Source of the DNA: Lepidodermella squamata
Lineage: Eukaryota; Animalia; Gastrotricha
Assembly: GCA_047495785.1 (NCBI GenBank)
Contig: JBLDXI010000029.1
Location: forward strand, 2,976,001-3,040,000
Direction of reading: 5' to 3'
Length of the DNA: 64,000 nucleotides
Shown piece after piece: positions 1 to 64,000 of the stretch. A program made the position numbers and the translations under genes. Every line of letters starts with the position of its first letter. Positions within the stretch are counted from its first letter, which is position 1. The notes beneath the pieces are model-generated. The model saw only the letters and a list, made by a program, of their open reading frames with translations. It was not told the origin of the DNA and made no database searches.

Positions 1-450
1 GCCTCTTCGTAGCCAGCTTCACGGCGCTGGGCCTCTTCGTAACCTGCTTCGCGGCGCTGAGCCTCTTCGTAGCCAGCTTCGCGGCGCTGGGCCTCTTCGT
101 AACCTGCTTCGCGGCGCTGGGCCTCTTCGTAACCTGCTTCGCGGCGCTGAGCCTCTTCGTAGCCTGCTTCACGGCGCTGGGCCTCTTCGTAACCTGCTTC
201 GCGGCGCTGAGCCTCTTCGTAGCCAGCTTCGCGGCGCTGAGCCTCTTCGTAGCCTGCTTCACGGCGCTGGGCCTCTTCGTAACCTGCTTCGCGGCGCTGA
301 GCCTCTTCGTAACCTGCTTCGCGGCGCTGAGCCTCTTCGTAGCCTGCTTCACGGCGCTGAGCCTCTTCGTAGCCAGCTTCACGGCGCTGGGCCTCTTCGT
401 AACCTGCTTCGCGGCGCTGAGCCTCTTCGTAGCCAGCTTCACGGCGCTGA
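1..450 (-). repeat. 30-bp coding tandem repeat, 15 copies in window (EAGYEEAQRR)
   Basis: Minus-strand unit GAA GCW GGY TAC GAA GAG GCY CAG CGC CGY, read directly. Confidence 0.97.
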
Positions 451-600
451 GCCTCACGCCTCATGGTCTCCCCGAGCGGATTCGAAAGGACCGCTGCTAC
501 CTTGTTTCAAAACAAATTTATCATTGCCATTAGTTATATGATACGCTCGTCAATCGCAGAAACTCACCAGACATGCTGCTATCGTTAGCTTGCAGATCAT
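1..600 (-). CDS. Secreted multi-copy peptide precursor (signal peptide + NPLGETM-RR-EAQ-[RR-EAGYEEAQ]n); 3' end lies outside the window
   Basis: Exon1 600-568 (MICKLTIAACL), 67-nt intron GTGAGT...AACAAG (567-501), exon2 500 to <1 (VAAVLSNPLGETMRREAQRREAGYEEAQ...). Frame is open to the window edge. Hydrophobic N-terminus; all repeat variation is at synonymous third positions. Confidence 0.85.
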
Positions 601-706
601 TTCGGGCTTGAATGAAAGGGCTGACGGAATATTTCAAAGAGGAAATTGCTTTTGATGAAACGTTGGTATTCTATGAATTTGGGAATTTTCACCATTTTCA
701 GCTACG

Positions 707-1907: not shown

Positions 1908-4163
1908 TTAGATTTCATTTATTCTCCAAAATATAATTAAAAACATGATGCTAGAATTAATTTCCATTTTCCCAGAACAACTCGCTAAAATCGGAATTTT
2001 CGGCGCCAAAATGTCCACAGATCGCTGCTGATTTGTCGCCAATTTTCTAGTCGATGTCGTATAAAATCTCGGATAGCCACTTGAAACTTCATTATTTTGC
2101 GTTGTAGTTTCGGGAATTTCGGACGAAAATTCATAATCCAGGGGTTCTTCTGGAGAATCCATGCCGTAATTAGTCGCTGAAATAGCGTTGAAAATCGCGC
2201 TATTAAATCGCGGAACAACAATTAGGTCATTCAATTGCTGTGTCCCACTTTCAGGCGCGCACAGCGCATTATTGCGCGCACTACACCTGCAGCCAATCAG
2301 CGACGCGCCTCGGCCCAGCAAAACCTGAACCATCGCCTCGCGATCTTCACAAGCCGCCCATATAACAGCCGTTCGATTGTACAGCGAATCTCTCGCATGC
2401 AAATCCGCACCCCGAGCCAGTAATAGCTGCGCAATTGCGAGCCGACCCCATCGCGCGGCTAATATTAAGGCGGATTGTTTATAGCCGTAGTCAGGGTACA
2501 GCTCTTCCTCATTCACCGAGACGTAGCTTGAGTCGAGAAATGAGGCGACAACTTCGATCAAATCAGCTCGAATCGCGTTGAAAAATGCCGATTTTAGCGC
2601 GTAAGGATTGACCTGGTTCAAGGGACATATCGCCTGTAGGGTGCCTAGTCGAGTTAGGGTGATGAGGTAACTCGGGTCCGAACAGTCTCGAACAGCTGGT
2701 GGGAACAAAAATCGGGCGGGATTCGATGCTGATAACATAGGCGGGTAATTCGGGTAAATAACAGGTGGATAAGCATTATCATCAATTGTTCGAGTTGGAA
2801 TCGGTCTCGGGGTTGTATCAATAAATTTAATGGTTGAAATTGGCATTAAATTGCTTCGAACTGTTGCGGCTCGGGTTGAAGTTGTTTGAGGCGAATTTTG
2901 AACCCGAATTGTCGGTCGAGGGGTACTTTTTACCAATGGTCCTAAATATTGACGAATCCACGGAATAACTCGACAAATTCCTTAAAAATATGAAATTAAA
3001 TTTAAATTTAAAAAATATTCAAAATTCAAAAATTCAGTGTTCAAATTATTGAAATTTTAAAATTTTAAAAATTCAAAAATTGAATTTTAAATTTTGAAAA
3101 TTGGCTTTTTGCCAACAATAAAACATACTTGAATAAACCGAAGGCTTTTCGCCTCCAGTTTCATTACAAGCCAAATGACCGTAGGAGGTAAGTGCCAGTA
3201 GGTACGGCTGGTTATTCGACCCTAGACAAGTCAAAGGTCCGCCAGAATCGCCGCGGCACGTTTGCTGGTTCGGACCGCCAGTTGCGCATATTTTCGCATC
3301 CGTGAAGTAGTCACCCTGATAAGTGAGCGCGCACTGGAGAAACGGTGCCATGTTTAGCGAAATTTTTTTCAGCCTCATTGACATGTAATCGGATGGGCCC
3401 GTCAATCCTATTTAAAAATAAAAATTGATTATAAAAAAAGATAAAAAATTAATTCAATTAATTCAATTTTGAAATTTGAATTTTAAAATTCGAAAAAATT
3501 GAGAACTTTTATTTTTTTCAAGCCATACCCCAGCCGACTGATGTCCCTTTCCAGCATGAATCGATTGTAGACGAAAGTAGGTCATAGTCATTATCGCAGT
3601 AATTATCGGGCAAATCAATAGGTTTTATCCCCATCGAAAGCGAAACTGGGTAATTAAGGCGTAACAGGGCAAAATCGAAATCAGTATTAGCACCGGGCCG
3701 ATAGTAAGGATGCACGTGAATGTCCCTATCTGAGACTAATCTAATCGCCTCGCCTCGCTCAGTTGTACTAAGATCAGTTTTCCCGAGGATAACTCTTGAC
3801 CTAATTATTGAAATTTTATTATAAAATTAATTAATTAAAATCGAGGTCATGGTACCTAATTGCTGTTTCTCGGCCTGTTGAGACACAATGCCCGGCTGTG
3901 ATGACCCAATTGTCCGAAATTAGGGCACCGCCGCACACAAATGTGTCAACGCCTGGGACATCGCTATAAATTCGAACCTAAATTTCATAATTTAAATTTT
4001 TTAAATTTTTTAAATTTTCAATATATACCATCCATGGAAATTCGAACCGTTGAGCAAACGACCCGCCTACAACGAGCGGGCCGTAATTTGTTGTTAAATT
4101 CGACGATTGGCATTCACAAAATGAAAATAAAACAACAACTAGCCATCCAATAAAATTGATCAT
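1908..4163 (-). CDS. S1 (chymotrypsin-fold) serine protease fused to a Pro/Thr linker, about 3 ankyrin repeats and a hydrophobic C-terminus; ~626 aa
   Basis: Exons 4163-4029, 3977-3856, 3800-3529, 3407-3129, 2980-1908, all GT-AG and frame-consistent. Signal peptide, activation site L|VVGG, CGGALISDNWVITAGHC (His), DFALLRL (Asp), GDSGGPL (Ser), VYSRICRVIPWI. The last exon continues into ANK motifs (QSALILAARWGRLAIAQLLLARGAD; RTAVIWAACEDREAMVQVLLGRGAS). Confidence 0.88.
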
Positions 4164-4466
4164 AACGGCGCCTCGAAATCTCAGCAATTCTTCATCACCC
4201 CATTCTGACGTGAAATTAATAAAACATTTTTTTTTAATGATTTTTTGTGTGTGAAATTAACCAAGGTGCCAATGCGTGATAAAACTTGGAAAAACCTCGA
4301 GTGACTCTCAGAGTAGACATAATAAAAAAAAATTGCCGAGTGCTGACCGAGTTGAATTATAAAAAATTGCATTTTATTGAACGTACAAAAATCAAAATTT
4401 AAATTGTGTTTATAACATTTTGCTGGTAAATTTCATAAATTAAAACAAAAACTGGATTTTATTTTG

Positions 4467-5936
4467 TCAATTTCGCGCCTCTTGTTTGGAATAGGCTTGA
4501 AGGGTAGAAGCATTCAGGATCAGCTCGTCGTAACTCGGAGGTCGACTCGAATTCACCGCTGTTTCGCCCAGCGTCGAGGTGAAATCACCCGTTGTCGCAC
4601 CCTGGGACCTTGAAGTCATCGCCTGCGAGTCAAAGGTCGCTCCAGTTACTAAAATCATAAAAAAAGTTTATATTAAAAAAATTGACCTAATTTATGACAA
4701 ACTAACCGGTTAGTTCAGGCGGGTTATTTCTCCGCCTCGGAACAGCCGGGGAGAGACTTGACCTTAAAGCCTGGACATGCCTGCGGTTGCGATACCTCTG
4801 AACAACTTTCCAGCTCAAAATAGCCGTAGCGCAGCATGAGAAGAAAGAGAGCGCGAAAACGTATAGCACCTCGGCATTACTCGCCCTTCGACGGCGAGGC
4901 GGCCGTTGGCTGGCCTGGATCGGGGCGGTTTCGGCTGCCAACTCGAATTCGGTTGTAGTTGCCGTGGTTGTTGTTGTAGCCGGCGATGTTGGCGCAATGG
5001 TCGATTTAATCAAAGGAGTCACAACGCCTCGACAAAAATACTTTCAAAAAATGAAAGATTATTTAATAAAAATTTCAATTTCAATTTAAAAATTTTCAAT
5101 TTAAAATTCTGAAATAATTTGAAAAATTCATTTTAGATTAAAAAAATTTTTCGAATAACTGATAATTTTTCTGAAGTTTTTTGTAATTTTTTGAAATTTT
5201 CCGAAATTTTTGAAATTTTTACCTGAATCGATCGACCTGATGCGTGAAAATCGACGAAATCATCCACCTCGCCAAAGTACTCGGCACTTGCCTCCGTTTT
5301 CCGGCTAAGAAAATGCTTGGCCGACTTGCCGTCGTGAAATTGCCACGCCTTCTGCTCAACAGCGTGACTGAGCGTGAAATTTCGCTCCAGCCTCACACTA
5401 CGCCCTAGCAACGACTCGACAATTGTCTCAAAAATTGGTGAAGCGTGACGGCGTGACGTGCAACTTGTCGCAGCTCGGGCCGGCAGGGTGTTCACAGTTA
5501 GATCCGGGCGTAAAATTTCCAACGGTGAACAAGCGCCGAATAACCGCCGCGCAAAACACTGAAGCGCGAAATTCGGCAATTTTATTAAGGTGGGCTTTTT
5601 TTCGTCACGCGTAATTAAATCGCCGCACAGATAAGTCTCACGCGTATCGATTGTAAGGGCCTTGTGAATCGACTCGGCAGCTTCTGGCATCAATCTCGCG
5701 AGTAACTGCTCGAAAATTTGCGGCGATTGATCGGCAATTAGCGATAGATGACCCTCCGTTCCGCATGGCTGGCTTTCGGATAAACTGTTACGTTGAATCG
5801 AAACAATGCCGATAACATAGACAGATTTTATCGCTGAAGAAGTCGAATTTCTCGCAGATTCGGTCACGGTTGAGTTACTCGCAATAGAAATTTCGGGATG
5901 ATAAAATATCAACAATAAAAAACTGAGAAAAAGCAT
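4467..5936 (-). CDS. Uncharacterised type-I single-pass membrane protein (~409 aa): Cys-containing ectodomain, Thr-rich stalk, TM helix, cytoplasmic PPSY motif
   Basis: Exons 5936-5223, 5040-4707, 4648-4467 with canonical splice sites. Signal peptide MLFLSFLLLIFY; TM VLYVFALSFFSCCATAILSWKVV followed by basic QRYRNRR; tail RPPSYDEL. Confidence 0.8.
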
Positions 5937-6131
5937 CTTCGTAGTTGGCTCTTATTCTGTTGAAAATCCAAAATTTATTTGTCGAAAAATTTGAGAAATT
6001 TAAATTTGACTGTGGAAACACGTGTTTGAATTTCCCGCGCGTGCCCCAACATCTGGCACTCATCTGGAAATTCTGGAAACAAAATTATAGGCACACCTCA
6101 TAATTTTACATCATTAATAAACACAATAATT

Positions 6132-9100
6132 ATGATACGTTTTTTACTTTATTCTTTGTTGTTTTTTGGCGCCTCGTTAGCAGACGAATTCGACTTGAAC
6201 TATGATGACACTGATACTTCAACGACTGCAACTCATCCGGTTACGACAATAGAAATTTCCACGACCACCTTAATTACCGAAAAAATCGAGGTTTAATTTT
6301 GAAGTTGTGAATTTTCGAAATTTAATTTTTTTCAATTTAATAGCCGAAAACATGTTTTTTGCCCGCCATTGAGAATGGCGAAATTGAGTTGCAAGGCGGT
6401 AATAATGAAGGTCAAGCTGTGCAAGGTTCAATAATTCGGCTGATTTGTATTTTCGGCTTCGAATTGGTCGGAAAACGCGAATCGAAATGCGTTAATGGAA
6501 ATTTCACGCCGGCACTTGGGCAATGTGTTGAGCTTGAGACTACGACTACAACTACGATTACTGAAGCTACGACGGCTGAAGAAGCTGTGCCTGAAGTCAC
6601 GGAACCTATTTCGGCTAAAAATATCAAAGTCGAAGCCGAAAAATCTGTCAATGTAAATTTTCATAATTTTCGTCAATTTTAATCTTTTTTCATTTTTCAA
6701 AAATTTAAATTTCGAATTTTTCTTGAATTATCAGTGTGCTATGCCGCCAATTGCGAAGGGTCATTTCGAAATTGTGGGAGTTCAAACCAGTGATGAAACT
6801 CTAGAAATCAATCATGGTGTGAAAATTCGGCTAATTTGCGAGCCTGGCTACACAACTTTGGGCACGAATCTAACCGAGAGCCTGTGCTTCAACGGCGTGT
6901 TATTCCCACAACCCGGCCAATGCGTAGACGCTACGACAACAACTCTAGCTCCACCTATGGTTCGTTTTTAATTTAATTTTTTTTTAATTTTATGAAAGGT
7001 TTTACTTGATTGCATTTGCCTGAAATTTGGAATTTTTCGAAGAAATTTCAATTTTTTTTCAATTTTTTCACAAATTTTCAAATATTTCGCAAAATCAATT
7101 AATTTCAATAATTTGAATAAAAATCTTTAAATTTTAAAAAAATCTGGAAAATTTCAATTTTAATTCATTTATAGTGTCTTCATCCTGTTGTTGCTAATGG
7201 GAAACTCGAAATCCCTAATGATGCGGATTCACTAGATTACGACCTCCATAGTGATCATGAACTTCAAAGCCAACCAGAATTCGTACCAATCGGAACCAAG
7301 TTGCGACTGACCTGTTCACCCGGTTATAAATTACTCGGCGGTTCCGAGTTGCTGTGCTACAGCCTTCATCATCAGCCTTCAGCCAGCTGGTTCCCACTAC
7401 CCGGCCGATGTATCTCGATCCCGACTACAACCACCCAGCAACCGGTCGCTTGCAAATGGCCGTCGGTGAGTGGCGGCTGGTGGTTGGAAGAGGACCATCC
7501 GGATCTGCTGGAGGCAATGGGCGAGAACCACCTGTCGCCTGTCGGTACCGTTTTGGTACTTCAATGCTCGTCGGAAAATTTCGAAATTATCGGCAGCAAA
7601 CGAATTTTTTGCCGCGAGAATTCGCAATGGTTTCCTGAACCTGGAAATTGCAGCCAAGGTAAACATATTATTTTCAAAAATCAAATTGAGATTTTCCGAT
7701 TTTTTTCAAATTTTCTTCGATTTCAATTTTTCTATCCTTAAACAATAATAATTCACCATATAGCTCTGGCATATATATTTTAGCAACCTGATAACCTAAG
7801 GTATGAAGAAAATTGTTCGATGTAGGATTCCCTAACTGCTGATATCGGAAAAATCACTGATTTGTAAAATCGATAACTGGAATCGATATCGGCTTCGCAG
7901 ACTCAAGTATGACTCATAATCTGACTGCCGATAGCGCAAATTGCGCGTAATAATGAGACCTATGGGCTAAACATTCAAAATTTAAATTTGACGCAAATTT
8001 TAAAAAAATTGAAAATTAAAAATTCGAAATTTGAATTTTTAATTTTTTTTTCGAGTCATTACCACTACAACCGAATCGCCATCGACTACGCAAGAAGTTC
8101 GCTGTCAGCTGCCATCAAGCGGCATAGGAAAGCTCTCAATCGATCACTCGAATCATGAGACATTCGAAAGTGTCTCATTATACTCTGAGATCACCCTGAC
8201 CTGCCCTGATAATTACGTAATCACTGGCGCGAATCGGGTCATGTGCGTAGGCCGCAACCAGCTATTCCCCGAACTCGGCCAATGCGTACCTGAGCAGACC
8301 ACGACTACTACAACAACAACCGCTACTACTCCTACCGAAACGACGACCATTATCTATTGCTCGGTGCCGCTTGTAGAAAATGGGCGTTATGATCTGTCAA
8401 GTGAAGATGATCCTATGAGTGTGTTGCCGGGTCGGAAAATTCAACTGACTTGCAACCCAGGCTACCAACCATCTGGGCCGAGTTCTAGCTCGATTTGCAT
8501 AGCTGGTGGCAACTGGTTCCCGAAAACTGCTGATTGTGTTGAAGGTAAATTAAATTTTCTCTTAATTTCAATTTAAAATTGCAATTTTTTAAAAGTGACT
8601 ACACCCGTTCCGCAAACGACGGCTAAAATCGTGCTACCTAATGACCGACTTTCTGGCGGTGAGAAATTTTGCAATGTCCCAACTTTGTCAATTGGGCGCT
8701 TTCGTGATGCGCAATATTTCGAAATTACGGAGGAAAAGCTACCGCTGGGTACCGAGATGTCGCTGGATTGCCCGGACGGGTATGACGCAGTGGGCGCTGA
8801 TCACGTGATGTGTGCCGATGGCAATAAATGGTTCCCGCCTACAACGGAGGCGAATTGCGTGCCGAGATCTACGCCTTCGGTGAGGATTAATCCGGAAAAT
8901 GTTGGTGCGAATTTTGAGACGGAGACAGCAGGGTGCGATGTCCCAAAAATTAGTACAGGTAATAATCACGAGTGTCATCAATTTTATTAGCTGTTAATAT
9001 TTTTTATTAGTTCATTAGACTATTTAAAATCACTTGAAATTAGCCGATTTTTCGCTAGATTGCCTGACCTAATAAATTTAGCAAAATTAAAACTTGTGTG

Positions 9101-12100
9101 CGCGTTCGAAGAATTCTTAAGAATTTTTCGACGGCGCGCGCTGACGTCAAAGGGCTACTTTTGAATATTTTGGCGGTTTTCATACCAAATTAAAATTCAG
9201 AAAATTCCCTATCGATTGAATATAGGGTTCTCGCGCGAAAAAATCAATGGGAACATTTTTTACGCACACGCTAAATTTCGAGCGCGCGAAGGAATAACGC
9301 ACTTAATTGACTCACAAATTTCGAGTGCGCTTACATTTTTTCCCATTGTATTTTTCGCGCGAGAATATTCAATCCCTATACTCAATCGATAGTGAATTTT
9401 CTGAACTTCATTTTAGTATGAAAACCGACAAACTATTTGATAATTGCCCTTTGACATCATTAGCGCGCGTTGAACGTGTCGAAACCTGGTTTTTTCTTCT
9501 CAATTGATGTCATTTATTTATTTCCAAGCTAATTGTTTTGTTAAAAGGTGATATTTTTCTATATTTTTTCCTCAGGTTATTACGCGGCCGATGGAGTTGT
9601 TAAAAATGTTGCTGTTGGCACCGAGTTGCACTTGACGTGTAACGAAGGTTATGAGGTGCCTATTACACATGGAACCATCAAATGTGTCAATCACAACACG
9701 TTTTTCCCTCTACCTGGAGAGTGCGACCTGCGTAGCACTGCTGTAGCAGATAAAGTTACTGCTGAGGACTCGAAAACGATTTATTGCGACGCACCAGTGG
9801 TCGAACATGGCAAATTTGATGGATATTCAGACCATGGGGCAAGTTGAATTATTCTCTATTTTCTTATTTTTTTCCAAATTGAAAAATTGAAAATATTTGA
9901 AGTGAAGAATTGAAAATTGAAAATTTTATTTATTTTTATCAATTTTAGTATAATGATAAAATTAAACTAGGGGAATTTTCTCTTTTTTGTCCATTTAAAA
10001 TCCAGTTTATTATTTTAATTTTTTTTATTTAGGCAGAGAAATTACCTCTCGGCACTGAATTGTGGCTAAATTGCGACGAAGGTTACGTCGCTACAGGCGC
10101 GACCGAAATTCGTTGTGTTGGCGAAAATGATTGGTTCCCAAAAGCAAAAGGAACCTGCGAGGTGATAGCAACAACGACCAGGACTACTATTTCTACCCCA
10201 TGCTCGAAACCGGTAATTGAAAATGGATCCTTTAAAATCACAAAGCCGAAGGATACAACGGCGACGATCGACGATGAATCATTGCCGGCTGGTCACGTGA
10301 TTAAGATCAAATGTGACCCGGGTTATTTCAATTTCGGTGCAACGTCCAGTATCTGCCTGGATTCGGGTGACTGGTTTCCAAGCTTGGCAACTTGCCAATT
10401 GCGTAAGCAAATTTCAAATAATTTAAATTTCGAAATTTAAAATTTAAAATTTAAAAAATTTAAAAATTTTAAATTTTGATTTAAATCATTTTCGCTAAAT
10501 TTTTAAAATTTGAATTTTTTTAGTTACGACTACTTCAACTCGAAGCCCACCTACGACACAAAAGGCCTATTGTTTACTGCCCAAAGTCGAAATCGGGCAA
10601 CTTTCCCGTGATTTCAGCCCCCTTCTCCCCGAATTCACCTTAAGCGTGGATGTTGGAAGCGAAGTGTCCCTGTCATGCCCTGATGGCTACATTGTCCAAG
10701 GCTACAGTGCAGTCATGTGCGTCGCCCAAGGCCGTTATTACCCTCAGGAACTTGGCCGATGTGTGCCGAGACCTAGCCCGACTACTACACCAAAACCGAC
10801 TCGAGTTTTTTGCGTCCTACCCCAGGCTGGAAATGGCCGCGTTGTCGCAGAGGAAAATTCGGGTGAAAATCAACAAGTTGGCCAGAAAATTCGGGTGATT
10901 TGTAACGATGGTTACTTACTGTTCGGCTCTAATTCGTCAATCTGCTTACCCGATGGCAAGTGGTTTCCGGATCTTGGTCAATGCGGAGAAGCTCCTGAAG
11001 GTAAAGGAGCATTTTGATTGAAAACATTTGAAATTTGAAATTAAAAAATTTGAAAATTCAAGAAAGTGAAATTTTGTAAATAATATAAAAATAATTTAAA
11101 ATGACCATTTTCGAATTTAAAAAATTCGAATTTTGAATTTTTTAAAATTTGAAATTGAATTTGAAATGAAATTTCGAAATTTTTAATTTTTGAAATTTTA
11201 TGTCAATCTCTGATTAATTTTCAATTTTCTTTCAATTTTTACATTTCTTTGTAAATTCAGAACTCGTTCATGAGGCTTCCGAATTGAGAAATGCGATTAC
11301 TGCTGGGGAATTGAGCGATGTCAAGAACATCTTCCGACCCTCGCTAAGTCCAGATTTCGCTAAATACCTCGAAACCAGCCGAGACCACGAGCAAAACGAT
11401 GAAACTCTAACAATGCGAGCGGCTGAAAGCGGGAAACTCGACGTTTTGAAATACCTGGTCGAAGATCGCAACATCGACCCGACTACTACAGACCGGCTTG
11501 GTCGAAACGCGTTGCACATTGCGGCGAAAAATTGCGAAAATATCGAACTGTTAAAATATCTCGCTCAACGAAATCCCGAGATGATCGAGGCGAAGGACGA
11601 CGAGTCGGGCAAAACGCCGCTTATGTATTCGATTATTAACGATAAATTGAGCTGTGCTGTTGAGCTGGTCAAGCAGTTTTCGGCTGATGTTGACGCGACT
11701 GATGGCGAGAAATGGTCGCCGTTACATTTTGCGGCTCAAAATGCCTCAAAAGCTATCGTCGCCTTTTTGTTAGCAAAAGGTGAGATAATTCTGAACAATT
11801 ATTTTAAGGCGGCCTTTTTAATTTTTAATCCTAATTTTTTCAATTTTCCTCATAATTTTTGAATTTTAATTAAGGTGCTAAAACTCGAGTGAAAAATCGC
11901 GACGATGACCTTCCAATTCATATCGCGGCTAAATTTGGCAACAATGGCGTGTTAGAAATATTGCTATCTCGTGACAGTGCGTTGCTAGAAGAATCTGGGT
12001 CACACGGCGCGACGCCCCTAATTAGCGCGGCCGAATCAGGTCAACTGCGTGTGGTTCAATTGCTGCTAAACGCGCATGATGCGAATATTGAAGCGCGGGA

Positions 12101-13698
12101 TGACACGTCGAGAACGGCTTTAATTGCTGCAGCGATGACTGGCCATCTTTCTGTGGTTAAATTTCTGGTGAAGAAAGGAGCGAATTTGAAGGCGGTTGAT
12201 GCTGATGGCAACCAGGCTGTTGATCTAGCTAGGTCAGCTGGCCATGGTGACGTGGCAAATTTTCTCCAGCAACAACTTGGTAATATTGCTCAAATTGTCA
12301 TTTTACCTGAAAAATACCTTTTCCATTTTTTTCGAACAGCTCCAATCGAAATGGTGAGTATTAAGATTTTTGAAAAAATCACCAAATTGGAACCTAATTG
12401 GAACCAAAGTTCATAGTCTGGAATATCAAACTTGGAAAAAATATTCATTTTCGAATAATTTTTGTTAAATGAAAATTAGCCGTATGTTCTGAAGTTGACG
12501 ACATGCTAAAATTCACGCACAATTCATGATAATTTATTTAAATTTCCCAAATCAGTTAAAAATTGATTTGGCTCCGCATTTAACGCTTGAAACTTCTTTC
12601 TTACTAAATTTTATTCTTAATGGAATTAATTTTTATTTTTTTACTTAAATTTTAGTGCGAAGTGCCTGTTGTAGCTAACGGTGCGTTTTTCGCGATTTCC
12701 GCGCCCGGCAAAGAAAGGGAGGTCAAGAATCCGACCCGGCTCAAAACTGGTTCCAAGCTGGTTCTCAAGTGTATCATCCCACTCGTTGTTGAAGCTGAAG
12801 CTGGGCTAACCTGTGCCGGTCCCAACACTTGGCAACCCCAGCCTAGCAAATGCATCAGCGCTCCAGCAGGTAAATTTTAAAAATATTTGTAAATAATTGA
12901 ATAAATTTAAAAAAATGTGAATTTTGTAAATTTATCAGAAATTTAAATTTAAATTTAAATTTTAAATTTCATTGCGATTTTTTACATTTTTTAGAACTCA
13001 AAGCCACCATGAAATCCTTGCGTCAGGCAATCGCGGCTAAAAATCTGGCCAAGGTGAAAGAAATCCTGGAAAATCCGCAACTGGACGATTCCCGAATCCG
13101 ATATTTACTCGACAGCCGATCGGAATTATCCCCTTATCGCACCTCGTTAATGGCCGCATGCCGCATCGGCCATTTGCCCATTGTTCGGTATTTAATCGCT
13201 GAGAAATCGGCAAATTTCGAAGTTCAAGACGGCGCGAAAGGCGACACGGCTATGCACATCGCCGCCCAGGCTGGTCGTTTAGATATCGTACAATATTTAT
13301 CCACCTTAATGACGTCAGAAAAGCACTCGCTAGCCGGCGCGAAAAACGACAAGGGCGAAACGCCGCTGCATTACGCAGCTCAATCCGGCCATTTGGAGGT
13401 TGTCAAATTCCTAACCACCCTGCCCGATGGTGATGGCCGGCATTTGGTCGATGTTGAAGCAGCGGATGAGCTGGGCAGGACGCCGGTTATGTCGGCGGCC
13501 TACGCCGGTCACGTGGCTGTTGTTGAGTATTTGATTGGTGAGAAGCACGCGGATGCGATGAAGCGTGACAAGGCTGGTGATATGGCTGTTCACCTGGCGT
13601 CGTATGGCAGCAAAACGGCGGTTGTCCAATTTTTGTTCAACAAATTTCCGGATCTCAAGAATGTGAAAGGCGCGTATGACTACGTCGCCAAAGCTTGA
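6132..13698 (+). CDS. Secreted protein of ~1664 aa: signal peptide, 12 sushi/CCP domains with Thr-rich linkers, ankyrin block, 13th CCP, second ankyrin block
   Basis: 14 exons: 6132-6290, 6344-6652, 6735-6959, 7175-7658, 8056-8544, 8596-8958, 9576-9838, 10033-10402, 10524-11000, 11261-11779, 11875-12279, 12340-12353, 12656-12869, 12995-13698. Phases are consistent (4995 nt). CCP pattern C-x-x-P-x(3)-NG...L-x-C-x-x-GY...C...W-F-P-x(3-4)-C. ANK motifs such as GETPLHYAAQSGHLEVVKFL. AATAAA at ~13738; no TM segment seen. Confidence 0.88.
9128..9474. mobile_element. Long imperfect palindrome (MITE-like) in intron 6 of the CCP-ANK gene
   Basis: Arms of ~150 bp, e.g. GCGCGCTGACGTCAAAGGGC / GCCCTTTGACATCATTAGCGCGC and CTATCGATTGAATATAGGG / CCCTATACTCAATCGATAG. 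Confidence 0.75.
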
Positions 13699-14096: not shown

Positions 14097-15175
14097 GCTA
14101 GTTGCTGGAGCTGCTTCGAGCGTGCGCTAGTTGCTGGAGCTGCTTCGAGCGTGCGCTAGTTGCTGGAGCTGCTTCGAGCGTGCGTGAGGAAGCTGCAGGT
14201 ATCTGTCAAGGAAGCGCACTCGGGCCATCTCTATGGCTAGTCTTCTACGGTGGCATAAGCCGATCAGTCACGCGCCCCAGTAGGGAATTGGGTTACCGGC
14301 CACCGGAGCCGTATACCTTTGCGGACGATTTTAATTTTGGCAGTGCATCACTAAGAGACGTCGATATGGCTGAAGCGAGTGCAGCACGATGGGCTCAGTC
14401 ACACCACGTATCGATGGACCCAAAAAAGCGCGTAGATACGAAATTCTCATACCCACGCTTCAACAGTGGCGCAAAAGGCAGGAAAGCTAATGCTGAGGAA
14501 GAAACGCACCATGAGGATGATCAAGTCAACATCGAAACGACGACACTCCTTGGACTAGTCTTAGACTCGAAGCTGTCGATGGAATCCTGCATCAAGCAAA
14601 AAATCGGAAGAGCAAACACGGCGATAACGCAGCTCCTGCGTCTACGACCCTTCATGTCCCTACGACAGCTCGAAAATGCATACAAAACCTATGTGTTGCC
14701 ATTCATCGAGTTTGGCATGGTCCCCTATTCGTTCGCGGCCGCCCCTTCAACACTGGAAAAACTCGATGCCGTCCAGACGAGATTTTGCAACATCACCGGA
14801 GCGAGCTTACAAACACTGGGTAGACGACGGTATGTAGGAGTAATGACCTACCTCTACAAGATAATCGTGGCGGGTCGCGGAACGAAGCAAGTCAGATCAA
14901 AATTCAGACGCATCTTTGTGAGGAAAACCGGTACCAGGGCATCGGCAGCAAAACACCACCATCAAATCTGCCTAGCGAAACCGTCAAACCAGCAGCGGAA
15001 CATCAAGCCCTACGAGAGAGTCGAGAAAATAATACAACTATGGAACGGAATACCGAAAACCTGCTTTCCGGAAATTGTTGATATTGACCTTTTCAAATGC
15101 TATATGAACGAACTAGGGATGTCGTTATAACCATCAGTACGCACCCGAAAGATTATGTAAATAAAAAAAAAAAAA
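14097..15175 (+). mobile_element. 5'-truncated non-LTR retrotransposon (C-terminal RT region) with poly(A) tail
   Basis: GICQGSALGP, YTFADD, LLGLVLDSKL, YKTYVLP and LWNGIP motifs; stop at 15130; A-run at ~15161-15175; 3x29-bp duplication at the 5' junction. Confidence 0.9.
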
Positions 15176-15307: not shown

Positions 15308-17274
15308 TTACGCCGTGGTGGATTGGCATCGATCCAACGTGAGGCCATATGCCGATGTTGACGCATAGATCACAGTATTGGCTGCGCTACCAGCGCCAGT
15401 TCCAGCTACAAGAGCGGCACAGCAGGCTGTGTACGAGGTGAAGGCTTTCAATGAGGGGCTCGAAGTCTGAGATGAAAATGGTTGATTGAATTGATAAAAA
15501 ACGCAAACAGAACAAGATAACTTACGACCCCTGACCCTGCTTCAACATCACCGACAGCATTGGAAGTGTGCGGGAAGCGAACGCAGTTGCCAACCTTAAC
15601 GACACTTGTGGTAGCTGTAATCTTGTAAGGGATACTATCATCGGTTGATATACAGGCAAGAGCCGGAGCCACTGATGCTGTGAGGCCAGGCAGGATCTCG
15701 TAGCGAATGTTGGCGGTCAACGGTGAAGCCGGGGCTGCAGCGGCGCAGCAGTCAGGGAATGAGCTGTAGGAGTTCGGGACAGATGCAGTTGCTGTGGCTT
15801 GCTGAATACAACTTAAGTCATTCACTGCTTGAAATATCCATTCTCTATTTTACCGTGAATGTGTTAGGGCCGAAAGCAGCGGTGCAAGCCAGGCCGTTAG
15901 TAATGCACAGCTTGACAGTCTTAGAGACTGCTGTTCCAAACGTCGAGCCCGTGCATAGCTGAAACGTTTGCTGTTGCATAATGAAACATTTTAGGTTCTA
16001 GGAATTAACTATTCATGGGCAGGGGTGCAAAATCTGCAAAAATGGCGCAGTGGCTGCGCGGGAAATTTTTACGCGCAGCGGGAAATTTTTGGGAAATAGA
16101 GTTGTGAAAATGCTCAGAAATCGCCAAAAATCAGCGGGAAATAAGGGAAATCAGCGGGAAATCTAACAAGTAATTAATCTTCCGCCGATAATTAATTTCA
16201 ATAATTAAGTGATTGAACTAATTAGCAATTCACGAATGACTTTTCTATCTAATTCCAATAATAACTTCTGTTTAACTAACGCGAAATCGGTGATAATAAC
16301 GGTTAGAAATTTCAAAAAACAAATTAGATATTCCGATTCAGCGTAAAAAGTTGGGTATTCCTGCCAAGTTGCGCGCAGCTGTGTTTGAAAATGAGGGAGA
16401 AATGCGGACTGAAAGTTTGCTTGTAACTGTGTGCGCGCACAAATCAGCGAGCGCGCGCGCACAACAGCGCACAACTGCGCGATTTCCTCGCGTTGAAAAG
16501 TGAAGGGGAGCGGGCGAGTGCGAGTGAGCGAATTTTTGTGGAGCACACACGCACGCACACGCGCGCGCACACGTGCAAAAATTGAAATTTGTTTCCGCCT
16601 ATTTCTCAACCAATTTTCACGATAACTGTGCGCAAATTTACAGGGCGGGGTAACTTTTCGCGCTGAATCCGAATATCTAATTTGTTTTTTGAAATTCCTG
16701 AAATTGAAAAACTTGGTTTATCTGCGTAATTAAGAATGTTAGGGTAATTACGATATTTAGCCACAAGTTTTTGGTTACCCCTAAATATGTGAATTATACT
16801 AGTATCAAGCCGTATGAAATGCGAAATCTGGCCACCAATTTAGGCCTAAAAATGTTTATACAAATTTAAAAATGTGCCGAATCGAGTATTTTCAGACATT
16901 TTCTCACTCCAAAATACTGATGTTTCTTACAATTTTTGCGCCGCGCGGGGCTTTGCAAGAAATAACCCACAGAAATACATTCCGCGAGCGAGCGCAGCGA
17001 GCGAGCGGGTTTTTCGGGAAATTAAAATCACTGCGCGGGAAGTTCTGCAGATTTTGCAGCCTTGTGCAGAATTTACCGCTGTGGAGCACGCCTGGGTGCC
17101 TTGGCATTGAGTTCCGGTTTTGCTGATGCAGTTTTTGGTTGACGTATCGCAGTTGTTCGACGTAGCAACACACGATTGGCCAGAAGGGCAAGCGCTCGAG
17201 CTAGTCGTTGTGGCCGGGCAAGCCATAACGGCACTGCAGGCAGCGGCAAGAACAGCCAGAGTTGAAAAGGTCAT
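15308..17274 (-). CDS. Secreted Cys-rich family protein, copy A (intact, ~249 aa)
   Basis: Exons 17274-17077, 15970-15854, 15801-15526, 15466-15308, all phase 0 and GT-AG. Signal peptide MTFSTLAVLAAACSAVMA|C; motifs QTFQLCTG, FPDCC, NIRYEILPG, GNCVRFP, YTACC, YGLTLDRCQS. Confidence 0.85.
16020..17064. mobile_element. Non-autonomous DNA element in intron 1 of copy A, with a nested inverted-repeat element (~16290-16705)
   Basis: TIR-like ends CAGGGGTGCAAAATCTGCA / TGCAGATTTTGCAGCCTTG and GCGGGAAA subterminal repeats. Internal inverted pair AAACAAATTAGATATTCCGATTCAGCG / CGCTGAATCCGAATATCTAATTTGTTT. The equivalent intron in copy E is only 64 nt. Confidence 0.75.
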
Positions 17275-24294: not shown

Positions 24295-26917
24295 AATTGG
24301 AATCTTCTTAACCCGAAGGTTGCAGAGGCGATGAAGGAAGTTTTTAATGACTTTGGCCTGCATCCGGCCTATGCTAACTTGGTAACACGTCCTGCTTCTG
24401 GAAAGTGCCTGGATCATTTCTGGTCAAACGTTCCTGACTCGGAAGTGGCAATGGCTGGGACAGTAGTCGGGCTCAGCGACCATTACGGAACGACAATGGT
24501 TCTTGAAAACAGTGGCGTTACTGAAACGAAAAATGCAGATGTTCGCGTAATACGTGACCTGCGCAACATTGACTCGAATCGTTTAAATTGCATTCTGGGA
24601 GCTAAATTAGATTCGATCGATCAGAAGGCATTTCATGACTGTGAAAGCTATTGGAAAATTATCAAAGCCTACATACTGGAAGCGGTCAACGAAGTTGCCC
24701 CGTTGATTGTGAAGAAGCCCAATCAACCAAACAAAAAGCGGAAGCCCAGTGTTGACCCGACCCTATCACAGCGTGAAAGGAAAAGAATACGTCGAAAAAT
24801 GCGTCGAGAAAAATATCACAAGCGTCTGACTGAAGGAGGTCGAGATCCGCGCAAAATATGGCGCGTGATAAATGATTTCAGACCGAAACCCAAACGCGGT
24901 GGACCCTTTCAAGAGCTCGGTGGAAATGAGTCATTGGAAAAGGCAAATGCTTTCAATGTATTTTTCGCGCAAGCCGGCGCGAAAGTTGCTCAAACATTAG
25001 CGGCGAGCCTCAGCTTTGTTAGGCGCCGAAAAAAGTATCCTAAACTCGAATTTCGGTCTGTCTCGCTAGCTGAAGTGGAGGCAGCTATCGATAAACTATC
25101 CTACAAAGCGACAACTGGCTATGACGGCATACCTGAGTGCGTTGTAAAGATGACCAAATCCACAATCTCCTGTCATCTGGCGAGATTATTCAACATGGGA
25201 ATCGCGGAAGGAGTCTTTGTTTCAGACTGGAAGATTTCGATCGTGTCTCCTCTTCACAAATCGGGAAACCGTACTGACCTAAGCAATTATCGTCCCATAT
25301 CAATAACATCACCGATCGCACGTACATTTGAGCGATGCTTGTCATTCCAACTAAAAAAGCATCTTTTCGAATTCTGGACACCGGCACAGCATGGATTTAG
25401 GGAGAAGCATTCCACAGACACCTGTGTCGGCGAATTCACTGAGGACTGGAGACGTTCTATGTGTGAAGGCAAGGTCGTTGGTGCCATTTCAATCGACCTA
25501 TCAAAGGCATTCGATACGTTGAACCATGGTGGCATCATCGAGTCATTCAAAAGTGCGGGTCTTTCAACAAGCGCCCTGAATCTACTGAGTAACTACCTGA
25601 GCGATCGCCGCCAGGCTACAAAGATTAACAGCGCACTATCTGCCTTCGAAGAAATTCACCATGGTGTGCCTCAGGGCTCAGTTTTAGGGCCACTTATGTT
25701 TACAGTGTACGTAAATGAACTATCACTCGTCGTTACGCGCTGCGGAATCAAACAATACGCAGACGATATAACAATTTATTTCGCCAGTCGGAACGTCAAC
25801 GAACTCAGATCGGTTCTTCAACAGGAAATCAATCGGGTTTGTTGCTGGTTGAAATCCAACTCCTTGCAGGTTAACGGTAAAAAGTCGCAATTTTTGATAT
25901 TGAAATGCGCGATGCCTACGGCTCCGGATTTCTGTATTAAAATCGGCGACGCAATTGTTAAGCCGTCAAGTGCAATGGTAACACTTGGCTTTACGATCGA
26001 CAATAAACTGTCTTTCAAGAAGCACATAAATGGTGCCAAAAGCAAAGCAAGAAGAGGTTTGTTTGCTCTCAAGCTGGCCTCGAAGTTCGTAAGTCGTAGG
26101 ACTGCTATCTTAATGGCCAATGGTTTGATATTTAGTCACTTGAATTACGGTGACCTGACCTTGGGCCAAGCTGCCCCGACCACACTGGCCAGGCTTCAAT
26201 CGACGCAAGACCGAGCAGTTCGAGTTATTTGTGGCGCTCATCCGCTCGCTGATGCTCAACCACTGCGACATCGCCTTGGCTGGGTTGACGTGGAACAAAA
26301 ACACGCCATCCACCTGGCCACCTTCATATGGAAGTGCCTTAACAAGCAAGCACCGGCTGCAATGCAAGCGCTTTTTTGTCTGAACCCGCCTCCCCGATAC
26401 GAGGTTCGAAATTCCGAACCCATGTTCAAGCCGAAATGCGACTCAAAACGAGAAATGCTTAGTCTGAGTTACAGAGGTCCCGAACTGTGGAATCAACTGC
26501 CTATTGAGGCACGGCAGGCCGAGTCAGCTGACATATGCCGTTCAATTGCTCACGCTTTTTTCTACAACAAAAATGCCTCTAGTTTAGCACTTTAATAAAT
26601 TGATTGCACTCTATTTTTTTACTGTTGTGAAGCTATTATGAGCTGCTACTGCCTTTCATGAAGTTGTTGAGATTTTGTTTTAATATTATCTTTATTATTT
26701 TTACACACTATGTACTACTGATCCAAATTGTTGACTGATCACTGCTACATATTAAAACGATGAATGGTCCAAACCTTTGTTTCGTCTCACTGTGTTCACT
26801 TTTCCTGTACTAAATCTGAACCTGTCCTGAAATTATCTGTTGCTTTTTCCTTCAAACATTGTCAAGCTGCCCTCTCTTGGGTGTCATAGCTTCTAAATAA
26901 ATAAATAAATAAATAAA
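24295..26917 (+). mobile_element. 5'-truncated LINE (CR1/L2-group-like; end of APE domain plus uninterrupted RT ORF) with (TAAA)n tail
   Basis: NWNLL, LDHFW and GLSDH (APE); NYRPISI, QHGFR, IDLSKAFD, GVPQGSVLGP and YADD (RT); stop at 26595; tail ~26895-26917. The empty site is visible in the paralogous B1 promoter (TAATTAC|TACCGTA, ~20091-20104). The first ~23 aa of the track ORF are host flank. Confidence 0.93.
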
Positions 26918-27945
26918 TACCGTAACATTCAACATTCGAAAATGTCAGCCAAACCCTAAAAAATTCATTTGCTTAGTCTTATCGAAAGAAACTAACTTCA
27001 TCTCGCAAAATGGGATGATTCACTGTCTCTGAACGGAATTCAGCGGTCTCCTTCCAGCCGCGGCTACCTTGAGGTCTTGTCGAGTAAATACGCCTCGAAA
27101 ACATGGCCGTGACTTCAAAGCCTAACACGTGGTAAGCATAATATCAAATCCATGGGTTGTACGTTAATTATCTGAGTTTTTTTCATGAGGCAATAGATAT
27201 CGTAGCGCGAGGGGAGCCACAGTCACGGGCGTTTAATTTTCTTGCGTTGACTATCCGTGCCTGAGAAGAGGCAAGCACTGCAGTATCATAACAATGAGCT
27301 GTAGCGTAATATACAAGATTTTTCTTGAAGCCTGCCACGGCCACCGGCGTTTGATGGTGTAGCGGGAGTATATCAGCTGATGGATTTAATCGGTTTGCTC
27401 GTTGCCGCTAAAGTCACGTGTGTAAAGAGCATGCACCGTGGTGAAACGATGCTCAAATTTCGTTACGATGAAACACTGTCCAGAGCGTGGGTGCTATACT
27501 TTCACGGTTTGTTTTGTTTGAGGCAAAAGATGAGCAACGCCGTTTCACCTGGCGTCTTTCTTCATCGTCGGAACCATCAGTTTTTTAGGCGAACACATTT
27601 GAGCAGGGGGGCTACAGCATTTTTCATTATATAAATGTCTAGAGCTTGAAGCTGCCGAGGCTAAACCATGGTCACAAAGTAGCAGTACTATACTTTCTTT
27701 TGTCACTAAGGTGTAAAATGTTCTCGATGATTCAACTCCGGAACAAATCTGCTTGAACTTGCTGACTTGAAATTGGTCACAGAAGCGGTAAAACTAATTA
27801 GTATCTCGTCTCATACTATATTCTATTGTTCCTGTTCATCCTGGACGATACTGCAAAATCTCTGACGCAACGGAATATGAGTTCCCTAAATATCAACTAC
27901 GCAAGACGGCCTCGGCAAATCACTGCATCGCAAACCACTCAGCTG

Positions 27946-47889: not shown

Positions 47890-48175
47890 TGAGCAATGAT
47901 ATAAGAGCAAAACGAGATGAGAGCAACGAGATGAGAGCAGAACGACGACAGACGCGACTTGTTTTTTCTTCTTCGAACAGACAATTGAATCTCGACCCAT
48001 TAAGTATCTCGAATTGCTGTTAAACCGCTCCGCTAATCACTTGATAATGATGAAGAAAAAACAAGTCACGTGCCACTATTTTTTCGTGATTTATCATTAA
48101 TAATTGCTCTTTCGTCGTTCTGCTCTCATCTCGTTGCTCTCATCTCGTTCTGCTCTTATATCATTGCTCATATCT
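47890..48175. repeat. Inverted GAGCAACGAGATGA arrays (MITE-like; duplicated at +8279)
   Basis: TGAGCAATGATATAAGAGCA...GCAGAACGACGA is mirrored by TCGTCGTTCTGC...TGCTCTTATATCATTGCTCA. Confidence 0.65.
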
Positions 48176-48486
48176 CATTGCTCTAATTTCGCTTGCTTTT
48201 TTCGCACACAACCTAATATTTTATGTCCACAAAAATCTCATGAACATTTTTTCAATCACTTCTGGATTTTTTATGCAATATTTGAAAAGTTCACTCCTCT
48301 TTTTAGTAATGATTCATTCAGCAATTTAGCGTGTCAGATCTTCTGATAATATACCAGCCTGATCAAAAGGCAGACGGGTTTAGAGCCCTATCAAAAATTG
48401 CCGTTTTTTCAACGGCCTCTTTGTAAGGAACTCGGGAACATAGTTAAGTTTATTTTCCTTCCACTGTGATTATGCCTTGAATACGT

Positions 48487-48869
48487 CATTATAGGGCGAC
48501 TTTGCAGTCACGGGATTTAGGGGTCGCTTGTTTTGCTGGTCTGAGTCGCTTATTCGCGAGGTCGTTGTGGTGGGGCGGTCGTGTAAAAATTTCTCGCTAA
48601 AAAACGAGAGTGAAAAAATGATGCACCACCAGGAGTCGAACTAAGGATGCTGGAATATAAAGCCATGTTTTGATCCACTACGCCACCAATTCATAGTAAC
48701 TATGAGTTTCTATCAGTGGATCGATTGACAGCAATATGGGTGTAAATATTTTCCCGGCTTTTTACACGACCGCCCCACCACACGACCTCGCGAACAAAAG
48801 CGACCCAGACCAGCAAAACATAGGCGGACTTTGCTCTTAATCCCGTGACTGCTAAGTCGCCCTATAATG
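48487..48869. mobile_element. MITE with ~100-bp TIRs enclosing a degenerate tRNA-like A/B-box segment (copy at 56766-57148)
   Basis: CATTATAGGGCGACTTTGCAGTCACGGGATT / AATCCCGTGACTGCTAAGTCGCCCTATAATG; minus-strand TGGCGTAGTGG ... GTTCGACTCC within 48621-48688. Confidence 0.75.
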
Positions 48870-48997
48870 GTATTGCGTTGTTGTTGATACGCACGCCATC
48901 GTTCGGTCTTTTTAACAAAGATCTTGCTTGTATCATTTTGATCATTCTGGTTATTTTCAGCTAGTAAACCCAGTTTTTTTTCCTAGTGAGGTTTTGT

Positions 48998-54900: not shown

Positions 54901-54942
54901 GCTAGTTGTCAATAAAATTGATAAAATTGCAGTTATCAGCAT
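48998..54942 (-). CDS. Secreted Cys-rich family protein, copy G (probably intact, ~279 aa; 5-kb TE-filled intron 1)
   Basis: Exons 54942-54652, 49665-49546, 49493-49215, 49147-48998, phase 0. Signal peptide MLITAILSILLTTSQA|C; two CPSSQxCVPxxNLCxDPSKSCQPIA units. The exon1-exon2 join is inferred, and exon 1 lacks the last Cys seen in copies A and E. Confidence 0.68.
49940..53393 (+). mobile_element. Complete non-autonomous hAT element, 8-bp TSD CTATGATC, interrupted by a CR1-like LINE
   Basis: 17-bp TIR CAGTGCTTCTCAACCTT / AAGGTTGAGAAGCACTG; TSD at 49932-49939 and 53394-53401. Confidence 0.93.
50711..53343 (-). mobile_element. 5'-truncated, frameshifted CR1-like LINE with (TGAGTA)n tail; probable TSD GAAAAT
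   Basis: VYRSP, VGDFN, PTRGDNILDLV and CDH (APE); NYRPVSLT, YLDLSKAFD, GVPQGS and LFADDTK (RT); LESVQKRFTK and FSRRVRAAWN C-terminal motifs; split over three ORFs. Confidence 0.92.
54381..54475. mobile_element. ~95-bp Tc1/mariner-type MITE flanked by TA (copy at 62660-62754)
   Basis: TA|CCGTAAATTCCGAAATACAAGCCCAGGCG ... CGCCTGGGCTTGTATTTGAATATTTACGG|TA. Confidence 0.75.
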
Positions 54943-63200: not shown

Positions 63201-63221
63201 TAAAATTGCAGTTATCAGCAT
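57277..63221 (-). CDS. Cys-rich family copy G' (duplicate of G)
   Basis: Same exons as G shifted by 8279 bp. Confidence 0.65.
58219..61672 (+). mobile_element. Duplicate of the hAT element containing the nested LINE
   Basis: Same TIRs and CTATGATC TSD as 49940-53393. Confidence 0.92.
58990..61622 (-). mobile_element. Duplicate of the CR1-like LINE
   Basis: ORFs identical to those at 50777-53251. Confidence 0.92.
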
Positions 63222-63740
63222 TAGATGATTCCAATTGCAAGGCAACATATTCGTTGAGACTATATAAGAGTAGTGGATACTGCAGTGAGTGTAAATAGAT
63301 GCGCTTTGCTGTTTTTGTTTAAACTGCCACAAGCGTCTTCAAAACATGCTAAGCTTCTCACGTTAACTAGCCAACGATGAAGCAGTATAAGTGCTTGTTT
63401 GAAACCGGATGTTATCCATCAAGTCAGGGCCGGATTAACGCATGGGCACAGCGGCATTTTACTAATAATTTCAGAACGATTATTGGGCCTTCCTTCGGTC
63501 GCATAATTATGTTGAAATGTAACTACGAGGTAGTGTTTTGTTTGCAAGAACTTTCGAGGAACAAGTTTTATATGGTTTTTTTTACCTGGTCGTATTTATT
63601 CGGCATCAATTTGCGCTACGGATTTAATTAGAAACTTGGAATATCTGTGATTGAATATTAAATTTTCTGAGGTTGTTCTTTTACGTTAAAATTGTTGGTG
63701 ATCATCTGTGCTATTCAGCGACGCATTACTTACTGATTAT

Positions 63741-64000
63741 ATGGCTGAAAACGGCAGACCGCCCTCCGGTCGCCGCCGGGGGCGTTCAGCAGAAGTCAAA
63801 ACCGGACCCACCGTCGTCTGCCACTGACGGCGCGAAGCTGCCGAAGAAACTCAATGTGAAGCAGGGCCTCTCGGCCGCTGCCATCGCCGAGGTCCAAGCA
63901 CTCATCCTACAGCACCGCAGTGCCGATGCCTCCCCCTCGTCCTCCGTCGACCGCATGGATGCCGACGCCGATTTTCCTGTGCTCCGGGCGTCGTCGTCCT
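63741..64000 (+). other. GC-rich coding-like segment, possibly the start of a LINE ORF1/gag-like ORF; runs off the window
   Basis: Abrupt GC rise; open frame DGAKLPKKLNVKQGLSAAAIAEVQALILQHR...DADFPVLRASSS; the upstream ATG at 63741 is in another frame. Confidence 0.3.

Follow-up and report, generated by a model that had tools for sequence, protein, structure and literature searches.

A hidden, spliced and abundantly transcribed gene of identical RR-bounded acidic repeats in a gastrotrich genome window: a candidate multi-copy peptide precursor

Some small secreted peptides are made as many copies within one longer polypeptide. Fungal Kex2-processed repeat proteins (KEPs) are operationally defined by three features, a signal peptide, repeats within the chain and dibasic sites that separate these, and in the alpha-factor precursor of yeast (MFalpha1) a KR-EA/DA signature is trimmed by Ste13 to give products that are unmodified and not amidated (PMC6339444). 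Among insects, the apidaecin precursor of the honeybee and the hymenoptaecin precursor of the ant combine a signal and pro sequence with repeated units bounded by RR and an E-A/E-P (EAEP) spacer, and a maturation by Kex2-like endoprotease, Kex1-like carboxypeptidase and dipeptidyl aminopeptidase has been proposed for these multipeptide precursors, whose layout is read as amplification of a single product (PMC3415428). Here we describe a gene of comparable layout at the left edge of a 64,000-nucleotide stretch of Lepidodermella squamata DNA (contig JBLDXI010000029.1, positions 2,976,001 to 3,040,000; hereafter the window). What appears there as a 30-bp satellite is the second exon of a hitherto unannotated gene, spliced and abundantly transcribed, in which the octapeptide EAGYEEAQ is repeated without change between pairs of arginines behind a predicted signal peptide.

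Our reading covers positions 1-1500, all features of the gene lie on the minus strand, and coordinates are window positions throughout. The features are as follows.

713-707, minus strand: TATAAAA box, read directly, 107-113 nt 5' of the ATG, a putative promoter element
601..617, minus strand: stretch of 5' untranslated region covered by contigs of the sequencing run X2 (see below), with A at -3 and gaaATGa as a good start context
600-598, minus strand: ATG start codon, read directly
568..600, minus strand: coding part of exon 1, 33 nt, MICKLTIAACL, the n-region and first half of the predicted signal peptide
501..567, minus strand: intron, 67 nt, phase 0, running from GTGAGT (567-562) to AACAAG, with the AG at 502-501
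500 to the window edge, minus strand: exon 2, VAAVLSNPLGETM-RR-EAQ-RR followed by (EAGYEEAQ-RR)n
483..500, minus strand: start of exon 2, VAAVLS, the remainder of the predicted signal peptide
456..482, minus strand: pro-piece NPLGETM and the first RR, from the translation
441..455, minus strand: shortened first unit EAQ and its RR, from the translation
21..440, minus strand: 14 complete units of EAGYEEAQ and RR, 30 nt per unit
1..20, minus strand: 15th unit, EAGYEE plus 2 nt, cut by the left window edge

The gene extends leftwards past the window, so its C-terminus and total copy number lie beyond the edge; this, together with the intron that splits it, accounts for its absence from lists of open reading frames (ORFs). 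The intron has a GC content of 34% and contains a CTAAT branch-like motif. Its removal creates the N-terminus MICKLTIAACLVAAVLS, which has a lysine in the n-region, a 12-residue hydrophobic core and the residues V-L-S before N-P, and whose Kyte-Doolittle mean over 9 residues has its maximum, 2.9, at LTIAACLVAAVL. By this heuristic reading of hydrophobic core and -3,-1 rule the protein carries an N-terminal signal peptide, with the signal peptidase site predicted after Ser17 (V-L-S/N-P). A preliminary description made from the letters of the window had proposed a hidden two-exon gene with TATA box and signal peptide, and direct reading of the sequence, its translation and the hydrophobic core bear this out; the order NPLGETM-RR-EAQ-RR-EAGYEEAQ-RR that it gave is likewise that of the translated exon 2. 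No second copy of the leader exon was found within the 64-kb window, and an Rfam scan of the whole window gave zero matches.

Transcription was assessed by searching public runs with the unique part of the locus and aligning the contigs obtained to positions 420-1400, the depths quoted being summed contig word depths that serve as a rough guide only. One run, X1, is labelled organism A; the other, X2, is labelled organism B, 2015, 'RNA?'. X1 covers exons, intron and upstream sequence alike and therefore behaves as DNA. The X2 depth is ~75,000 on the repeat, ~10,000 and then ~2,200 over the unique start of exon 2 (range 2,000-10,000), 0 in the wholly intronic bin 519-551, and 5,400-6,100 over exon 1 and the first 17 nt of the 5' untranslated region (~5,400 in bin 585-617). 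It is 0 again in all bins from 618 to 1046, beyond which there is a trace depth of at most 12 over a repeated element that resembles a miniature inverted-repeat transposable element (MITE). Joints in X2 contigs skip exactly 67 nt (501-567) and connect position 500 to 568, with ends that read CT..AC on the plus strand and hence GT..AG on the minus. One X2 contig retains a remnant of a SMART-type cDNA primer, and this together with the exon-only pattern supports X2 being cDNA, although its RNA label is a guess. From the exon-only depth and the exact 67-nt joints we therefore conclude that this is a genuine gene whose transcripts are abundant and lack the predicted intron. Where the preliminary description had asked for RNA evidence of an intron at 501-567, its precise removal is seen in the X2 contigs, so that the lack of a spliced transcript, named there as a refutation, does not arise; at this depth the contigs indicate expression as a mature mRNA, subject to the guessed label. 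The ratio of depth on the repeat to depth on the unique exon, ~8-14 in X2 and ~8-35 in X1, suggests that the array is not vastly longer than the ~15 units visible.

The array itself is constrained as protein. Tandem Repeats Finder describes positions 1-455 as 15.2 copies of a 30-nt period with 91% matches, and a search with the back-translated pattern of AGYEEAQ yields 14 complete copies, none of them outside the array, where 0 are expected by chance. These 14 units comprise five DNA variants and a single peptide: the variable unit columns (6, 12, 15 and 27) are in every case third codon positions, and all four changes are synonymous, as the preliminary description had stated. Only 20 of the 90 single substitutions possible in a 30-nt unit are synonymous, which for independent sites puts the chance of finding all four synonymous at ~0.0024. 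Read in the remaining two minus-strand frames the same variation gives five differing units, and one of these frames contains stops, as does one frame of the plus strand. This shows that the invariant octapeptide has been kept constant by purifying selection on the protein. The short internal repeats thus number 14 complete and one cut, identical in protein sequence; the earlier count of 'at least 15' holds when the copy cut by the edge is included, and falls to 14 when complete copies are counted. Dibasic sites separate all of them, RR standing at each boundary and also after the pro-piece, and the P1' residue of these sites is Glu, as in alpha-factor.

Variants in the sequencing runs point the same way. 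Two further X2 joint variants both have the first codon of exon 2, within the predicted signal peptide, changed from Val to Ile, and one of them also carries tgc-ctt for tgt-ctg at 568-571 and so keeps Cys-Leu by synonymous substitution. A variant common to X1 and X2 combines a synonymous Val change at 489 with a replacement of E by G at 469 in the pro-piece; apart from the first-codon V to I this is the sole replacement seen in exon 2, and given this change the pro-piece tolerates substitution. Several alleles or paralogues therefore exist in which leader and peptides are kept and the spacer varies, a pattern that fits a constrained peptide with a looser spacer. As an observation in its own right, the two-letter haplotype at 469/489 occurs under both organism labels, which suggests either a shared paralogue or allele, or that the X1 and X2 labels denote close relatives.

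The 5' end is less simple. X2 cover stops at 617, 17 nt 5' of the ATG, whereas the TATA box would place the transcription start near 683. One X2 contig of 131 nt continues for 21 letters past 617 in a sequence unlike the genome, and an acceptor-like ttccgtcag is present on the minus strand at 629-621. The boundary at 617 could reflect a diverged 5' untranslated region in organism B, an upstream non-coding exon or a trans-spliced leader. Further upstream, ~500 nt 5' of the ATG, the MITE-like element occupies 1098-1222, its 33-nt inverted arms being 91% complementary and 59 nt apart. The X1 depth rises to ~25,000-27,000 in bins 1047-1112, compared with 90-400 nearby, so part of this element must be highly repeated in the genome, and one X1 contig skips 1089-1179.

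The best-supported mechanism for these features, judged by analogy with the systems introduced above, is that the product is a secreted tandem-repeat pre-pro-protein acting as a multi-copy peptide precursor, a reading to which we assign about an even chance of being right. As such it is an orphan precursor of a well-known kind and not a new kind of system. Its predicted signal peptide, its repeated units and the RR pairs at their boundaries answer to the three elements of the KEP definition, and every unit is identical and bounded by RR, whereas the repeats of genuine solenoids vary from unit to unit. In the proposed pathway signal peptidase would cut after Ser17, and a subtilisin-like proprotein convertase specific for plain dibasic sites (PC1/3, PC2 or Kex2-like) would cut after each RR late in the secretory pathway; the residue at P4 is Ala, and the sites are therefore not furin R-x-K/R-R sites. 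A carboxypeptidase E/D- or Kex1-type enzyme would then strip both C-terminal arginines, so that each molecule would yield NPLGETM, EAQ and ~15 or more copies of EAGYEEAQ. A dipeptidyl aminopeptidase of DPP-IV/Ste13 type may trim Glu-Ala from these and halt at Gly-Tyr, leaving GYEEAQ. In the trans-Golgi the tyrosine, which has Gly at -1 and Glu at -3, +1 and +2, may acquire an O-sulfate. Each unit ends Ala-Gln before RR, and because no Gly precedes the arginines the product would not be amidated, in agreement with the preliminary description. The many copies would amount to stoichiometric amplification of one small acidic peptide serving as a signal, a pheromone or in defence or secretion. By the same analogy a neuropeptide, pheromone or other role may be supposed for it. 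The computed monoisotopic masses are 895.356 Da for EAGYEEAQ and 695.276 Da for GYEEAQ, with a shift of +79.957 Da on sulfation; for the Arg-extended intermediate EAGYEEAQRR the value is 1207.558.

Several points weigh against a precursor. RR cleavage, Glu-Ala trimming and Tyr sulfation are proposed purely on analogy, and the 'RNA?' label of X2 is, as said, a guess. Most animal neuropeptides have an amidation Gly, a common though not obligatory trait that is absent here. Glu-Glu stands four residues before Arg-Arg in what is a polyampholyte unit, and the AlphaFold2 model is a single unbroken helix from residue 8 to 165 (mean predicted local distance difference test score, pLDDT, 92.3), making an uncleaved rod physically plausible. 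The 3' part of the gene lies beyond the window, where a differing functional C-terminal domain could follow. Finally, the protein formally passes the Pfam threshold for the Decapeptide repeat (71.8 versus 45 bits).

Relatives were sought by several routes. A full-text literature search with EAGYEEAQ, GYEEAQ and sub-strings returned no relevant paper, and a word-indexed search with the 166-aa exon-2 product, covering proteins of 91-290 aa, gave no candidate. An exhaustive HMMER search of 1.84 billion representative proteins gave 1,485 matches, none with the peptide, the best being Decapeptide-repeat or other E/A/R-rich repeat proteins of 17-54% identity; almost every strong match falls in the Pfam family PF25296. 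Back-translated DNA patterns had 0 matches in metagenome contigs (two scans) and in prokaryote genome contigs. The best feature score in the ESM Atlas was an uninformative 0.79. Sequence search of the PDB returned only DotG/IcmE and designed pentapeptide-repeat proteins, which we set aside as relatives on the same grounds as the Decapeptide-repeat proteins considered below. A Pfam match to 'Bradykinin' of 21.4 bits was rejected, being the sum of weak repeat matches in which no single stretch is significant. The preliminary description had envisaged a match to an already described precursor; none was matched in the literature or protein searches. We attribute the lack of a similar protein among the 1.84 billion to repeat masking, intron-split signal peptides and k-mer assembly, which hide such genes, and there is a practical warning in this, as these same three keep such genes out of proteomes.

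The Pfam score calls for comment, since it could be taken to mean that the array is a true member of PF25296 'Decapeptide repeat', a family comprising the repeat of Legionella DotG/IcmE and of many bacterial and protist proteins, and that it forms a folded repeat domain, perhaps horizontally acquired. The hmmscan match (71.8 bits, E 4.5e-20) does exceed the 45-bit curated cut-off, phmmer matches to such proteins reach 1e-146 (7.9e-50 for IcmE in the PDB), the 10-residue period and A-G-Y core are common to both, and P0126 (LRSAGYSAAQ) agrees with our unit at 6 of 10 positions. Agreement fails elsewhere in the unit. Counting 2,304 periodic units from 127 matches gives the consensus L-K-x-A-G-[FY]-[ST]-A-x-[EDQ], with which the unit RREAGYEEAQ was compared: position 1 is Arg here, against Leu in 83% and Arg in 0.2% of family units; position 7 is Glu, a residue that 1.2% of units have there, with Ser/Thr in 78%; and position 8 is again Glu, present in 1.0%, with Ala in 59%. 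The array therefore departs from the family at each of the three non-anchor positions that the family conserves most. Per residue it scores ~0.5 bit, where a true member reaches ~1.4, and the presence of 15 identical copies inflates the total. True members also vary from unit to unit and do not have dibasic boundaries, and no similar DNA was recovered from the prokaryote genomes or metagenomes searched. AlphaFold2 models made from single sequences under identical settings differ too, P0126 being predicted as 6-residue helices alternating with 4-residue turns and our protein as one unbroken helix. We judge the score to be a four-to-six-residue coincidence multiplied by 15 identical copies, convergent and not a sign of membership, and membership itself to be very improbable. 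Still harder to credit is a transcribed but non-coding satellite in which open frame, ATG and splice sites arose by coincidence. The position of the 30-bp tandem array at the window edge and the openness of two of three minus-strand frames might suggest one. Yet in the transcripts a GT..AG intron is precisely removed, which puts a hydrophobic leader beginning with ATG in frame with the array; in one frame the variation is exclusively synonymous; and the paralogue or allele variants keep the leader through synonymous changes.

Two further readings accept a secreted protein and dispute its cleavage or its purpose. The protein could remain uncleaved as a secreted repeat protein, a charged single alpha-helix, polyampholyte rod or coil in which RR serves charge balance, and would then be a structural, matrix, mucus, adhesive, egg-coat or cation-binding component. 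The predicted helix at high pLDDT agrees with this, as does the spacing of exactly four residues between Glu7/Glu8 of one unit and Arg1/Arg2 of the following one, an i to i+4 Glu-Arg salt-bridge pattern being that of ER/K single alpha-helices. A very high transcript depth would suit a bulk secreted product, and secreted adhesives, mussel foot protein 1 among them, are known to contain perfect tandem decapeptides that bear Tyr. Known ER/K helices are, however, mostly intracellular, and a Gly-Tyr in each unit is atypical of them; identical units with synonymous-only change, RR boundaries and a short pro-piece ending in RR are traits of precursors, and ~16 exposed RR sites would need to escape the convertases of the secretory pathway. 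We regard an uncleaved rod as rather unlikely. Alternatively, the acidic repeat could be a pro-region or linker array for an active domain or cationic peptide encoded further 3', beyond the window. In antimicrobial and venom precursors the mature peptide at the C-terminus is accompanied by anionic pro-pieces, with Arg as their last residue, that neutralise it, and the C-terminus of our protein does lie past the window edge. Spider complex precursors contain Glu-containing quadruplet processing motifs that flank anionic linkers, and the start (R-E-A-G) and end (E-A-Q-R) of our unit may be likened to these. But at least 15 identical, constrained copies would be unusual for a discarded spacer, as spacers normally drift; the replacement observed sits instead in the short N-terminal pro-piece, and no peptides intervene between the supposed 'linkers'. 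The X2 depth ratio of ~8-14 suggests an array little longer than seen, although it is silent on the tail. A linker function is in our view improbable.

The multi-copy precursor thus stays our preferred reading, and an apparent 30-bp satellite proves to be among the animal's more abundantly transcribed secreted-protein genes. It supplies an exact and easily testable peptide, recognisable by two masses, each with its sulfated counterpart. If such peptides are indeed set free, an orphan family of non-amidated acidic peptides would be added to the biology of animal peptide signalling or secretion. A more far-reaching proposal, which we think unlikely, is that the gene founds a hitherto unseen family, confined to its lineage, of acidic signals six or eight residues long, non-amidated and possibly sulfated on Tyr, which would be made in an animal by an alpha-factor-like RR/Glu-Ala route and act as hormones, pheromones or secretion cues on a receptor of their own, and is one among several precursor families of this genome that gene prediction has missed.

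The remainder of the window holds ankyrin, trypsin-like and Sushi/CCP-type exons with very short introns and several reverse-transcriptase ORFs; the Sushi/CCP, trypsin-like and ankyrin exons identify it as animal genome. Look-ups of the exact products of three ORFs of the window gave no recorded match, the closest homologues of two neighbouring ORFs had 34% identity at most, and an Atlas look-up with a reverse-transcriptase ORF singled out no phylum. A trypsin-like exon (GDSGGP) adjoins ankyrin repeats at 1908-3405 on the minus strand. On the plus strand, at 7301-13698, Sushi/CCP-like Cys-containing exons with Thr-rich linkers are followed by ankyrin-repeat exons, again with very short introns. 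A perfect 29-nt tandem repeat (14097-14184, 3 copies, 100% identity) lies at the start of a degenerate reverse-transcriptase ORF. An ATG-initiated ORF of 115 aa at 16927-17274 on the minus strand has a signal-peptide-like start, MTFSTLAVLAAACSAVMA, and a Cys/Thr/Ser-rich body, and is possibly a small secreted Cys-rich protein. Positions 48000-64000 contain a direct duplication at a spacing of 8,279 nt, the reported 300-nt pair (48000-48299 and 56279-56578) being 100% identical; three reverse-transcriptase-type ORFs (50777-53251 and 59056-61530) and an 84-nt tandem repeat (54673-54832 and 62952-63111) recur at the same spacing. A tandem duplication of very recent date would explain this, as would an artefact of assembly.

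Set beside known systems, the gene has in common with PF25296 the 10-residue period, the A-G-[YF] core, a basic position 2 and Gln/Glu at position 10, and it differs in its predicted signal peptide, dibasic boundaries and identical, not degenerate, units. A comparable organisation is that of the FMRFamide-type, cnidarian Antho-RFamide and TRH precursors of metazoans, which have a signal peptide and many identical, very short peptides separated by dibasic sites, and whose transcripts can be abundant. Our gene likewise encodes a predicted signal peptide and many identical short peptides between dibasic sites, but the neuropeptide copies end in Gly before the basic pair and are thereby amidated, whereas here the ending is Gln-Arg-Arg and the net charge is -3. 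In gastrin/CCK, sulfakinin and the plant peptide PSK a Tyr among Glu with a small residue at -1 is the context for tyrosylprotein sulfotransferase. Our unit presents its Tyr among Glu, with Gly at -1 and on a predicted secretory route, though it has no sequence relationship to these peptides, and before cleavage the RR at -4/-5 would be mildly unfavourable. The apidaecin and hymenoptaecin precursors offer an animal parallel; their repeats too are bounded by RR and a spacer of Glu-Ala type. Their mature peptides are nevertheless of 18-97 aa and cationic or Pro-rich, with no sequence similarity to ours; only an anionic 6-8-mer would be left here after trimming, and an apidaecin-type antimicrobial role is therefore unlikely. 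MFalpha1 and the KEPs match our gene in signal peptide, short pro-region and near-identical tandem peptides that follow a dibasic site and then Glu-Ala. They are fungal and without sequence similarity to our animal gene, and MFalpha1 has 2-4 copies of a 13-mer with (Glu/Asp-Ala)2-3 where our gene has an 8-mer in at least 15 copies, each with one Glu-Ala. The parallel with alpha-factor and the KEPs is thus an analogy of mechanism and not of family membership, and should the peptides be released the gene would be an animal case of the RR and Glu-Ala layout, of which yeast alpha-factor and the antimicrobial precursors of Hymenoptera are the best-known examples.

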